This document shows positions 49,909 to 52,021 of a DNA stretch of 64,000 bases, one piece after another. Under the pieces are notes generated by a model, which did not search any database, was not told where the DNA came from, and saw nothing but the letters and a program-made list of their open reading frames with translations. Location of the stretch: NCBI GenBank assembly GCA_023334545.1, contig JAADVB010000021.1, forward strand, positions 1-64,000. Reading direction: 5' to 3'. This DNA is from Salisapilia sapeloensis CBS 127946. Its lineage: Eukaryota; Protista; Oomycota. How positions within the stretch are numbered: the stretch's first letter is position 1; every line of letters begins with the position of its first letter. Position numbers and translations under genes: made by a program.

Positions 49909-52021
49909 ATGAGCTGGAACGACCGATACGCCGACTCTTCGTCCCGTAGGGACTATGGCGGAAGCCGATACGACAGCAGAGGTGGCGGAGGAGACAGAGG
50001 TGACAGAGGAGACCGAGGTGGAAGCAGATACGGCGGAGGCGGAGGATACGGTGGTGGAGACAGGTACGGCGGCGGATTCGGAGGCGACCGTGGCTTTGGT
50101 GGTGACCGTTTCGGCGGTGACTTGGGATCCAATCTGGAGCAAAACATCAAGTGGGACTTGTCTAGTCTGCCCGTGTTTGAGAAGAACTTCTACTATGAGC
50201 ACCCGGACGTTGCCAAAAGATCAGAAGAAGAGTACGACGCTTGGAAGAAGGAACATCAGATCACGGTGTCTGGAAAAGGCGTTCCGAAGTGCGTGATGAC
50301 GTTTGAAGAAGCCTCGTTCCCAGAATACGTCTTGGAGGAGGTGAACCGTCTCGGATTCGCCAAGCCGACGCCGATCCAGTGCCAGGGCTGGCCCATGGCG
50401 CTCTCTGGAAGGGACATGGTCGGTATCTCGGCCACAGGTTCCGGCAAGACGCTGGCGTTCTTGCTGCCAGCTATCGTCCACATCAATGCACAGGTTGGTT
50501 GTCCGGCGTAATTACAGTCTGGCATTTACCTTTTTTATATACATGTACACCTACGACGGTAAGGAGGGTGTGTCGACGGAGGAAATCGGCGATTTTGATG
50601 TGTTGTGGTACATTATCGTCGTACCAAAGGGGAAGAGCGAGGGAGCGATTGTGTTTGAACGTCGTGACGTAATTGAATGATCGTGAGCAAGTCGTCGACG
50701 CCTGCTCGCAACCATTTCGTTGTGCCCAGTCGAGTCACCAGGGCGCTGCGTTTTGTCTTGCGTTAGCGGATTGGTCGCCATGTGCAAAAGGTACCGACCT
50801 CTACGCTCTGGAGAAATGTATGCTCCCAGCTCGTCTCGCTCTTTTCACGGCCTCCGTGCATCTCCATTTGCACGCGTCTACCGTCCATGTAAGCTACGGA
50901 GCAATGCATAGCATACTAACGTTTTCTATATCATAGCCTTACCTCAAGCCTGGCGACGGACCGATCGTCCTTGTCATCGCTCCGACGCGGGAGCTCGCCG
51001 TGCAGATCCAGCAGGAGACGCACAAGTTCGGTGCCACCTCTGGCATTAAGCACACTTGCGTCTACGGAGGTGTCCCCAAGGGTCCGCAGATCCGAGATCT
51101 CTCCAACGGAGTCGAAGTCTGCATCTGGTACGTACCTCTCATCCTCTTCCTCCTCAATATACTAATGACATGCACAGTACGCCTGGCCGTATGATCGACA
51201 TGCTGAGCATTGGCAAGACCAACCTCCGTCGTGTGACCTACTTGGTGCTGGATGAAGCCGACCGGATGCTCGACATGGGTTTCGAGCCGCAGCTGCGGAA
51301 GATTGTGAGTCAGATCCGACCGGACAGACAGACGCTCATGTGGTCGGCGACGTGGCCGAAGGAGATCCAGTCCCTCGCGCGTGACTTTTTGACAGACTAC
51401 ATCCAGGTGACCGTCGGTTCCCTCGAACTCACGGCCAACAAGGCTATCAAGCAGATCGTCGAGGTCATGGACGACTACGACAAGTACAATGCCTTGATGG
51501 ACCATTTCAAAGATATCTATGGCGGTGGACGCGTGCTGGTGTTTGCCGAAACCAAGCGAGGCGCTGATGAACTCTCGCGCAACCTCCGTGACAGTCGCTA
51601 TGGCGTCAGGGCCATCCACGGAGACAAGAGTCAGGAAGAGCGTGATCGTGTGCTCAAGGAGTTCAAGGAAGGCCGAGTCAACGTCCTCGTGGCCACGGAC
51701 GTTGCGTCCCGAGGTCTTGACATCAAGGACATTCGATATGTAATCAACTTTGACATGCCCAAGAACATTGAGGACTACATCCACCGCATCGGACGTACTG
51801 CTCGCGCAGGGAACAAGGGTATCGCCATCTCGTTCTTCACGTCGGACAACGGCAAGCTTGCGAATCCGCTCGTCAAGATCCTCGAAGAGGCGGAGCAGGA
51901 AGTCCCGAGCAAACTGCGAGACCTTGCGAGTCGAGGAGGCGGCGGAGGCGGACGCTACGGTGGCGGCGGAAGGGGCCGTGGAGGTGGACGCGGAGGTCGA
52001 GGTGGCTTTGGACGCTACTAG
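49909..52021 (+). CDS. DBP2: DEAD-box RNA helicase DBP2/DDX5 (3 exons)
   Basis: RGG-rich ends; FEKNFY; PTPIQ; ATGSGKT; PTRELA; TPGR; DEAD; SAT; HGDKSQ; SRGLD; [10 protein letters not shown]. Introns 50494-50936 and 51130-51177. Confidence 0.98.
50494..50936 (+). promoter_or_regulatory. Unusually long, highly self-complementary DBP2 intron 1 (candidate regulatory RNA)
   Basis: 443 nt versus about 45-70 nt for most other introns here; donor GTTGGT; TACTAAC at 50914-50920; nested complementary arms. Confidence 0.6.

Follow-up and report, generated by a model that had tools for sequence, protein, structure and literature searches.

Helicases of the DDX5/DBP2 family remodel RNA structure genome-wide, and in every lineage studied their dosage is tightly controlled, each time by a poorly spliced long intron with differing cis-elements. 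The DBP2 gene of the oomycete Salisapilia sapeloensis CBS 127946 carries a long first intron, which raises the question of whether this intron likewise restrains helicase output and by what means. An earlier note on this DNA had proposed a folding switch, in which a nested stem hides competing splice donors until the helicase unwinds it. We followed up this proposal by computational analysis of the 64,000-nucleotide stretch containing the gene (contig JAADVB010000021.1, positions 1 to 64,000, hereafter the window), of transcriptome contigs and of orthologous oomycete genes.

Gene structure and retention of the first intron

The host gene (49909–52021, plus strand) encodes a DBP2/DDX5 RNA helicase in three exons, as judged from its translation. 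The canonical helicase motifs that we looked for as a mark of the DDX5/DBP2 subfamily are present in a Pfam DEAD match split over exons 1 to 3 (profile positions 1–39, 43–98 and 101–166) and a Helicase_C match (E 4e-35). With single exons as queries, the top matches were oomycete proteins named DBP2 or DDX5 with 78 to 86% identity, and a metagenome scan for closer relatives returned a best identity of 73%, with none close. Exon 1 (49909–50493) encodes a Gly/Arg-rich tail, the Q motif and motif I (GSGKT) and ends with HINAQ; exon 2 (50937–51127) starts with PYLKPGDGP and holds motif Ia; and exon 3 (51178–52021) supplies the remaining DEAD domain, the Helicase_C domain and a second tail before the TAG stop, the Gly/Arg-rich tails at both termini being of the RGG type. 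The mRNA contigs have their 5′ ends at 49890–49906 and their 3′ ends at 52075.

Intron 1 (50494–50936) lies in phase 0 between GT and AG ends. The exceptional length claimed in the earlier note was borne out: at 443 nt, the intron is eight to nine times as long as the RNA-verified introns nearby (n = 2; 50 and 55 nt). The weakness ascribed to its donor, GTTGGT (50494–50499), was likewise confirmed, as the donor has U at +3 compared to A or G in all 12 short control introns. A TACTAAC branch-site consensus (50914–50920) is located approximately 17 nt from the AG acceptor, and an in-frame TAA (50509–50511) is reached at codon 6 when the intron is retained. Intron 2 (51128–51177) has 50 nt and a GTACGT donor.

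Transcriptome contigs were obtained from four runs, comprising three samples of organism A and one of a relative that is 96% identical (organism B). Each of the four runs yielded contigs with the canonical joint 50493|50937 and also an unbroken unspliced form of intron 1, represented by a 501-nt unitig (50464–50964). Rough unitig-depth ratios place the unspliced share at 28 to 57%, with the reservation that contig depth is a poor gauge of isoform ratios and that the libraries may have been made from either poly(A)+ or total RNA, so that the unspliced signal may partly represent nascent pre-mRNA of an intron that is merely slow to splice. Intron 2 is cleanly spliced, with its joint in all four runs and a residual unspliced depth estimated at about 2%. 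Because intron 2 and the intron of a neighboring gene are spliced in the same RNA data and the intergenic stretch 49726–49846 has no RNA coverage, the unspliced intron 1 does not derive from DNA carry-over. The premature-stop isoform anticipated by the earlier note is thus present in every run; its route is retention of the whole intron, and the inner-donor splicing that the note had envisaged was not seen.

Conservation of the intron across oomycetes

An intron of 394 to 723 nt occupies the same codon boundary in every orthologue compared (eight lineages, from Aphanomyces to Phytophthora), in genes whose remaining introns have 50 to 85 nt; the median Phytophthora intron is 74 to 78 nt (PMC2483917). 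The donor reads GTT.GT, with the nonconsensus U at +3, in seven of the eight lineages, and every orthologue has CTAAC or CTGAC at a distance of 17 to 39 nt from the 3′ splice site. Upon retention, 10 of 11 sequences first meet an in-frame stop at codon 4 to 26, the exception reading through to codon 123. Between the window and organism B, the intron shows 18 to 19 substitutions in 443 nt and no indels, compared to a divergence of 0.084 at exon third codon positions, and between P. infestans and P. nicotianae the intron diverges by 0.112 versus 0.318 at four-fold degenerate sites. In these two independent species pairs, the intron is therefore substituted at roughly 0.35 to 0.5 of the silent-site rate, with few indels.

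Across genera, alignment of the introns fails beyond the splice signals (38% column identity), and no block is common to all lineages. Phytophthora species share a near-invariant intron block that measures about 115 nt and contains an imperfect hairpin of 35 bp, in which 98% of cells are paired and changes are one-sided and of the wobble type only, a pattern that fits a structure although covariation is not demonstrated. A covariance model of the block finds the orthologous locus L001 (E 0.003); in the window intron, the block was detected neither by this model nor by nhmmer. A homology of window positions 50830–50860 to the Phytophthora block, drawn by eye, was withdrawn, as the nhmmer profile misses them. 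The 9-mer TTGTGTTTG (50649–50657, plus strand) occurs once within the 64-kb window and recurs at differing positions in the DBP2 introns of four lineages; five of its six occurrences in other loci lie inside the orthologous long intron.

Retention, the early stop and the weak donor, together with the conserved length, donor and sequence, are the demonstrated part of our reading, and the conservation of the last three across oomycetes argues for a function. Since the intron is both conserved and often unspliced, it probably limits the amount of helicase. With somewhat better than even confidence, we favor the view that intron 1 of the oomycete DBP2/DDX5 gene is a selected, hard-to-splice intron that caps helicase output.

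Predicted folding and alternative readings

The earlier note described nested complementary arms closing most of the intron. Arms 1, 3, 4 and 5 of this stem (counted from the outside) and a small hairpin at 50846–50858 are exact complements, whereas arm 2 is imperfect. As a whole, the stem does not exceed shuffled sequence in stability, an outcome that the note itself had named as speaking against it: the minimum free energy (MFE) of the intron is −140.2 kcal/mol versus −137.8 ± 5.3 for shuffles (z −0.46), and repeat shuffle runs gave z values of 0.0 and −0.3. A sequence of 443 nt should, on a simple count, contain about six perfect 7-mer complements by chance alone, and the longest uninterrupted helix, of 13 bp, is equalled in 10% of shuffles. 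Pair probabilities were 0.90 to 0.99 for arm 4, about 0.65 for arm 3, 0.21 for arm 1 and 0.01 for arm 5, for which another register is used; the small hairpin, claimed to be mutually exclusive with one long-range arm, is not predicted to form (0.05). The minus strand folds unremarkably (z −1.3), and a duplex test of the 5′ half against the 3′ half gave mixed results. When substitutions between organisms A and B were compared with the MFE structure, paired sites were not depleted, no compensatory pairs were found, and 5 of the 12 substitutions in paired positions break pairs.

The sole robust long-range helix is predicted between 50630–50646, which contains arm 4, and 50829–50846, a pyrimidine-rich block approximately 80 to 105 nt upstream of the 3′ splice site. 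The MFE and centroid structures both contain this helix (pair probability 0.90–0.99), it lies in the 4 to 10% tail of shuffles, and the duplex of its 5′ arm with the 3′ block has a z of −1.9 (p 0.04). Organism B keeps the helix with one wobble-compatible change, and the 3′ arm falls within a stretch that is substitution-free in organism B (50803–50901). The only locally over-stable segment, 50814–50923 (z −3.1 when the intron was scanned in windows of 110 nt), is predicted to adopt a branched fold and adjoins the branch site. A local hairpin is also predicted at 50528–50569, where the U-tract 50528–50538 pairs with GGUAAGGAGGG (probability 0.70–0.74).

Structure is unusually strong in 9 of 10 orthologous introns (MFE z −2.5 to −5.2), and a z of −2.5 was not reached by any of the 42 flanking control segments. 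Several of these introns contain long hairpins, and long-range complementarity clusters in blocks ending 80 to 104 nt from the 3′ splice site. The long-range duplex is significant in two orthologous loci, L002 (p < 0.003) and L001 (p 0.007), and marginal in the window (p 0.04), and the longest perfect helix is exceptional in L002 only (18 bp). Positional counterparts of the window helix were found in L001, L002 and L005; any homology among them would be by position alone, and that position was chosen post hoc.

These results lend no support to a folding switch that sets rival splice sites against each other. As formulated in the earlier note, the nested stem hides donors at 50559 and 50889, and unwinding by DBP2 exposes them to yield isoforms that keep the TAA at 50509–50511. 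Both sites, G|GTAAGG at 50559 and T|GTAAGC at 50889 (the latter inside the over-stable segment), do exist and are identical in organism B, the first is predicted to be paired (probability 0.74), and a plant hairpin considered below acts by masking an alternative splice site (bioRxiv 10.64898/2026.01.23.701338). However, the junctions 50558>50937 and 50888>50937 occur in no contig of the four runs, the unspliced unitig is continuous over both sites, and GTAAG is absent from most orthologous introns. The site at 50559 is predicted to be covered by the local hairpin with the U-tract instead of being buried in the outer stem, and the low pairing of the outer arm and the competing hairpin and the lack of excess stability over shuffles also weigh against the switch, which we regard as very unlikely.

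An ordinary functionless intron, lengthened by an ancestral insertion and slow to splice through a donor that is poor by chance, would account for the unspliced contigs as normal pre-mRNA. The fold of the window intron, the failure of cross-genus alignment and the inseparability of nascent and mature RNA by contig depth are consistent with this explanation. We nevertheless consider it unlikely, as a minimum length of 394 nt and the U at +3 have been kept in lineages in which the intron sequence is otherwise saturated, and the reduced substitution rate with few indels in two independent species pairs, the near-invariant Phytophthora block and the excess structure in orthologues all argue against it. 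The block with its imperfect hairpin and the long hairpins of several orthologues could instead indicate that the intron hosts a separate element, such as a processed small or long noncoding RNA, a small-RNA precursor hairpin or a DNA enhancer, with splicing regulation being secondary. This is rather improbable, given that Rfam yielded no match at E ≤ 5 for the window locus or at gathering score for eight orthologous loci, that the window intron contains no C or D boxes (RTGATGA and CTGA are absent), that the lineages have no sequence block common to all of them and that the four runs yielded no separate short contig from within the intron, contigs being liable to lose small RNAs. A host intron for a box C/D or H/ACA snoRNA in particular was rejected on the first three of these grounds. 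A transposon or MITE remnant might explain long-range inverted complementarity, for example the 18-bp helix in L002, but is scarcely credible: no further copy of the intron occurs within the 64-kb window, a long intron occupies the identical site in all eight lineages with unrelated sequences, and the intron sequence is under purifying selection.

Proposed dosage control and its parallels in other lineages

Under the preferred reading of a hard-to-splice intron that caps helicase output, the retained intron is probably dosage-limiting and autoregulatory. The dosage function, the decay of the retained form, the enhancer role of the helix and the feedback by DBP2 are the parts that we infer. A donor with U at +3 and a length 6 to 10 times the local norm would make splicing slow, so that a large share of transcripts would retain the whole intron. 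Such transcripts would end at intron codon 6, encoding only the N-terminal tail and motif I, and are presumably decayed or held in the nucleus. The helix 50630–50646/50829–50846, with extra hairpins in relatives, is probably a structural splicing enhancer that joins the intron ends, and the likeliest control would be negative feedback, in which excess DBP2 melts or remodels the structure and splicing declines. More tentatively, it is possible that a helicase-sensing DBP2 intron evolved independently in oomycetes at a position not used in the DBP2-like loci examined from other eukaryotes (78 of 80 are without an intron at this site), and that structure, in the form of a long-range helix here and long hairpins and a conserved block in Phytophthora, keeps a weak-donor intron spliceable until DBP2 melts it and thereby shuts off its own production.

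The oomycete intron would thus parallel those of DDX5/DBP2 genes in yeast, human and plants while differing in position. The regulatory intron of fungal and human DBP2/p68 genes lies in the C-terminal half of the gene, a half that is without introns in Salisapilia; the oomycete intron falls between motifs I and Ia, and its sequence is unrelated to that of the C-terminal S. cerevisiae intron. Control through a poorly spliced long intron is described for the yeast, fission yeast, human and plant genes (PMC4695336, PMC1920232, PMC12311795, bioRxiv 10.64898/2026.01.23.701338). Autoregulation by the S. cerevisiae DBP2 intron is credited to Barta & Iggo 1995 (cited in PMC4695336 and PMC12311795). 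In these accounts, the S. cerevisiae gene is of the same subfamily and its intron is long for the genome and inefficiently spliced, as is the oomycete intron (443 nt versus 50–55 nt for its neighbors, with the unspliced unitig in all four runs). Control by inhibition of splicing would be negative in both, with protein feedback shown in yeast and inferred in the oomycete.

Intron 2 of S. pombe dbp2 is also a poorly spliced long intron, and its retention cuts mRNA output and is stress-responsive; unlike the oomycete intron, it promotes decay via TNAAAC motifs bound by Mmi1, and its position in the gene differs (PMC4695336). An intron of this decay-promoting type was rejected here, as clustered TNAAAC motifs are absent (0 in the window intron and 0 to 2 per orthologous intron). 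Human DDX5 and DDX17 have similar partially spliced nuclear pre-mRNA pools that respond to helicase level, but in other introns and with cross-regulation between paralogues, whereas one such gene was examined here (PMC1920232).

Direct precedent for helicase-controlled splicing comes from plants, where the DEAD motif of DRH1/RH46 senses helicase activity and leads to premature-stop isoforms, including intron retention (bioRxiv 10.64898/2026.01.23.701338). Both systems place a structured RNA, predicted in the oomycete, within a long intron of a helicase gene that is DDX5-like and RGG-tailed, and the premature-stop form is found here as well. The plant motif, reported from land plants only, is a sequence-conserved single local hairpin of 19 to 20 bp with a 3- to 5-nt loop that masks an alternative 3′ splice site (bioRxiv 10.64898/2026.01.23.701338); it was rejected for the window intron, which has no such local hairpin, no alternative joint and no Rfam match, and in which the predicted helix is long-range. 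The zipper stems of yeast offer a possible mechanical analogy, as the long-range helix of RPL7B shortens the distance between 5′ splice site and branch point and its disruption results in autoregulation (PMC12311795). Both RPL7B and the oomycete gene have a long intron with a suboptimal signal, the candidate oomycete counterpart of the zipper being the predicted long-range helix. The two differ in that RPL7B has a weak branch site and is regulated by a ribosomal protein stabilizing a competing fold (PMC12311795), in contrast to a weak donor and a putative helicase regulator in the oomycete. If true, such control in oomycetes, from a new intron position, would indicate that intron-based helicase feedback has evolved repeatedly, and would add a fourth convergent route to DDX5-family homeostasis to those of yeasts, animals and land plants. 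It would also provide a small system, with 443 nt, a single dominant helix and a single weak donor, in which structure and helicase activity could be tested against splicing efficiency.

Finally, many deposited Phytophthora models of DBP2, an essential gene, are truncated or fused, and the long intron appears to upset gene prediction at this locus.

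A long intron at a fixed site in oomycete DBP2 genes

Domain and homology searches run exon by exon identified a DBP2/DDX5-type DEAD-box helicase gene on the + strand of the window, composed of three exons and 539 codons by our count. Exon 1 (49909-50493) ends in HINAQ upon translation, exon 2 (50937-51127) opens with PYLKPGDGP, and exon 3 spans 51178-52021. Intron 1 (50494-50936) is 443 nt long, with a GTTGGT donor, TACTAAC at 50914 and an AG acceptor; intron 2 (51128-51177) measures 50 nt and has a GTACGT donor. The DEAD profile is split over the three exons (positions 1-39, 43-98 and 101-166) and is followed by Helicase_C (Pfam), so that intron 1 interrupts the first RecA domain between motifs I and Ia.

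Orthologous loci of eight lineages were retrieved by exact look-up of homologues matched with the exon-3 ORF, and their exons were mapped by tblastn. An intron lies at the exact HINAQ|P boundary in every one of these loci, and 78 of 80 DBP2-like loci of other eukaryotes have no intron at this site. Its length is 394 nt in Aphanomyces invadans (L008), 576 nt in Pythium oligandrum (L007), 607 nt in Phytophthora infestans (L006), 608 nt in P. ramorum (L014), 625 nt in P. nicotianae (L009), 657 nt in P. fragariae (L015), 646 nt in a JGI metagenome organism (L010), and 551, 626 and 723 nt in three Logan assemblies (L002, L005 and L001, respectively). The remaining introns of the gene in these loci measure 50-85 nt, and the median Phytophthora intron is 74-78 nt (PMC2483917). 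The donor of the long intron is GTTGGT, GTTTGT or GTTCGT in seven of the eight lineages and GTACGT in Aphanomyces only, compared with A or G at +3 in 12 of 12 short control introns. In 10 of 11 sequences, reading into the intron meets its first in-frame stop at codon 4-26, and all orthologues have a CTAAC/CTGAC branch site 17-39 nt upstream of the acceptor.

Across genera the introns cannot be aligned (38% column identity); within genera they are conserved above silent sites. Comparison of the window with organism B, a 96%-identical relative, showed 18-19 substitutions and no indels in the 443 nt of intron 1 (about 0.042 per site), against 44 substitutions in 522 exon codons, those listed all being third-position changes (0.084 per third position). 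As the third-position rate predicts about 37 intron changes, the deficit has p ~1e-3 by our Poisson estimate. The central 157 nt of the intron holds 11 of the 18 listed substitutions, and 50803-50901 holds none. No relative with 86%-96% protein identity was found. P. infestans and P. nicotianae differ by 0.112 in the intron versus 0.318 at four-fold degenerate sites, with indels far rarer in the intron than in flanking intergenic DNA. The introns of the four Phytophthora species share an almost invariant block of about 115-150 nt (L006 2765-2929, L009 3506-3670, L014 3731-3897 and L015 3007-3175; counterpart in L001 at 3542-3674); silent sites of these species differ by about 30%.

Splicing and retention of intron 1

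RNA data comprised the contigs of four assembled runs, three from organism A and one from organism B. These are transcriptome assemblies, since the divergent intergenic stretch 49726-49846 had no coverage in the four runs and both DBP2 intron 2 and the 55-nt intron of a neighbouring gene (52461-52515) were removed. The canonical joint 50493|50937 was present in all four runs, as was a 501-nt unitig (50464-50964) spanning all of intron 1 without a break. Unitig depths (spliced 137, 111, 49 and 19; unspliced 53.5, 80, 65 and 12.7) place the unspliced share at 28%, 42%, 57% and 41% per run, to be read as a rough guide because contig depth measures such shares poorly. For intron 2 we estimate about 2% from bin depths. 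The retained intron 1 reads VGCPA and then the stop TAA at 50509-50511.

An earlier note had proposed a helicase-sensing switch in which inner donors at 50559 and 50889 compete with the intron's own donor. Such a switch is unsupported, as the contigs of the four runs contain no joints starting at 50558 or 50888, and the inner GTAAG donors are not conserved, most orthologous introns having none. A frequent joint at either position would also split the unspliced unitig, which is unbroken, indicating that the main alternative form is whole-intron retention. Intron 1 is nonetheless conserved, under constraint and heavily retained, and it most likely throttles DBP2 output.

Elsewhere in the gene, a joint skipping 491 nt (51274-51766, AT..AA) appeared in run X5 only, and short pieces of other contigs mapped to the motif II region (51241-51292) in all runs; these probably represent paralogue transcripts or an assembly chimera rather than splicing. 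Organism B carries a 27-nt in-frame insertion at window position 50067, in the Gly/Arg-rich N-terminal tail.

Structure of the intron in the window and in orthologues

The sequence features behind the proposed nested stem are real, all five pairs of complementary arms being present where the note placed them (arm 2 imperfectly), but their fold is not beyond chance. The whole-intron minimum free energy was -140.2 kcal/mol against -137.8 +/- 5.3 kcal/mol for dinucleotide shuffles (z -0.46; 0.0 and -0.3 on repetition), and 36 of 100 shuffles folded at least as well, so that, judged by the note's own criterion, the thermodynamic claim fails for this intron. The longest uninterrupted helix is 13 bp, which 10% of shuffles equal. 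In the predicted ensemble, arm 4 (50631-50641 with 50835-50845) has a pair probability of 0.90-0.99 and belongs to a longer, roughly 17-bp helix (50630-50646 with 50829-50846), arm 3 is moderate (~0.65), arm 1, the outer stem (50555-50561 with 50879-50885), is weak (0.21), and arm 5 is not predicted (0.01). Neither is the supposedly mutually exclusive hairpin CACGG-CCT-CCGTG at 50846-50858 (0.05), and the GTAAG at 50559, which the note placed in the outer stem, is instead predicted in a local hairpin with a U-tract (0.74). Local excess stability is confined to 50814-50923 (z -3.1). The donor GUUGGU (50494-50499) is complementary to the branch-site ACUAAC (50915-50920) and paired with it in both the MFE and centroid structures; this pairing is not kept in orthologues having GUUUGU donors.

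Whole-intron z-scores in the orthologues were -3.9 (L001), -1.7 (L002), -3.5 (L005), -3.8 (P. infestans), -3.1 (Pythium), -2.5 (Aphanomyces), -3.6 (P. nicotianae), -5.2 (L010), -2.7 (P. ramorum) and -3.5 (P. fragariae). Against 42 flanking 400-nt control segments, mostly coding (mean z -0.18, SD 1.28, none reaching -2.5), these values mark the DBP2 intron family as unusually structured, with the window copy as the exception. Within the Phytophthora block lies an imperfect hairpin of 35 bp, with 98% of its cells paired and its changes restricted to one side and compatible with wobble pairing; no double compensations occur among the four species, and covariation is therefore not demonstrated. 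A covariance model of the block located the homologous stretch of L001 (E 0.003). As neither this model nor an nhmmer profile matched the window, we claim no sequence homology for the 3' arm there.

Each intron's final 200 nt were scanned with a sliding 25-nt block, whose strongest pairing with the 5' part of the intron was scored against shuffles. Mean z stayed near 0 unless the block ended 80-104 nt before the 3' splice site (-0.9 to -1.3); there, individual values were -2.1 and -2.7 in the window, -3.1 and -4.8 in L002, -2.7 and -3.0 in L005, and -1.8 in both P. infestans and Aphanomyces. Alignment-defined blocks gave a 21-bp duplex in L002 (0 of 300 shuffles as good), a 19-bp duplex in L001 (p 0.007) and a 21-bp interrupted duplex in the window (p 0.04), and in six lineages the 5' partner of the block is 95-173 nt away from the donor. 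This putative recurrent helix, at a position picked post hoc and with three lineages giving no signal, lends suggestive support to arm 4, the core of the proposed stem.

Intron 1 holds the only copy of the 9-mer TTGTGTTTG in the 64-kb window, at 50649-50657; in 112 kb of other loci, counting both strands, it appears six times, five of them in DBP2 introns. It is carried by the introns of the window, L001, L005, P. infestans, Pythium and P. nicotianae at positions differing by lineage, a sharing reached by none of 2000 mononucleotide shuffles. The 9-mer resembles the GTTTGT donor and might serve as a decoy or bind a protein.

Relation to known helicase introns and neighbouring features

Yeast DBP2 is autoregulated via splicing inhibition of its long intron, as Barta & Iggo 1995 is cited in PMC12311795 and PMC4695336, and the poorly spliced intron 2 of S. 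pombe dbp2 recruits Mmi1 and the exosome (PMC4695336). In humans, p68 regulates partially spliced pre-mRNA of its own gene and of p72 (PMC1920232). The long DRH1 intron of land plants has a 19-20-bp hairpin that senses the helicase and steers splicing to premature-stop forms, retention included (bioRxiv 10.64898/2026.01.23.701338), and long yeast introns have zipper stems that enhance splicing and are open to disruption by regulators (PMC12311795). We likened the oomycete intron to all of these systems, and it is a member of none: its position probably differs, it has no sequence relation to them, it lacks the DEAD-type hairpin of plant DRH1, and, unlike S. pombe dbp2, the window intron has no Mmi1-type motifs. 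A putative feedback in which the DBP2 helicase acts on intron RNA structure is plausible. Our literature search found no published description of the oomycete intron.

Other identities were rejected: Rfam gave no match in the window (E <= 5) or in eight orthologous loci (gathering score), C and D boxes are absent from the window's intron 1, and the window contains no further copies of this intron.

Among deposited Phytophthora models of the DBP2 orthologue, many (P0127, P0128, P0130 and P0135-P0141) have truncations or fusions, with lengths of 323-449, 737 and 1117 aa where ~540 is expected, a probable consequence of the long intron with its GTT donor defeating gene predictors. Gene callers predicted ORFs of 168 aa in L010 (258-764) and 178 aa in L001 (3000-3536, - strand) that fall wholly inside the long intron and match nothing in Pfam; most likely these calls are artefacts caused by non-coding sequence rich in GC. 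A two-domain Kir-type channel gene (window 52084-54730, - strand) is the convergent neighbour of DBP2 in every oomycete locus fetched, and in the window the transcript contigs of the two genes overlap by about 20 nt at their 3' ends (52055-52075).
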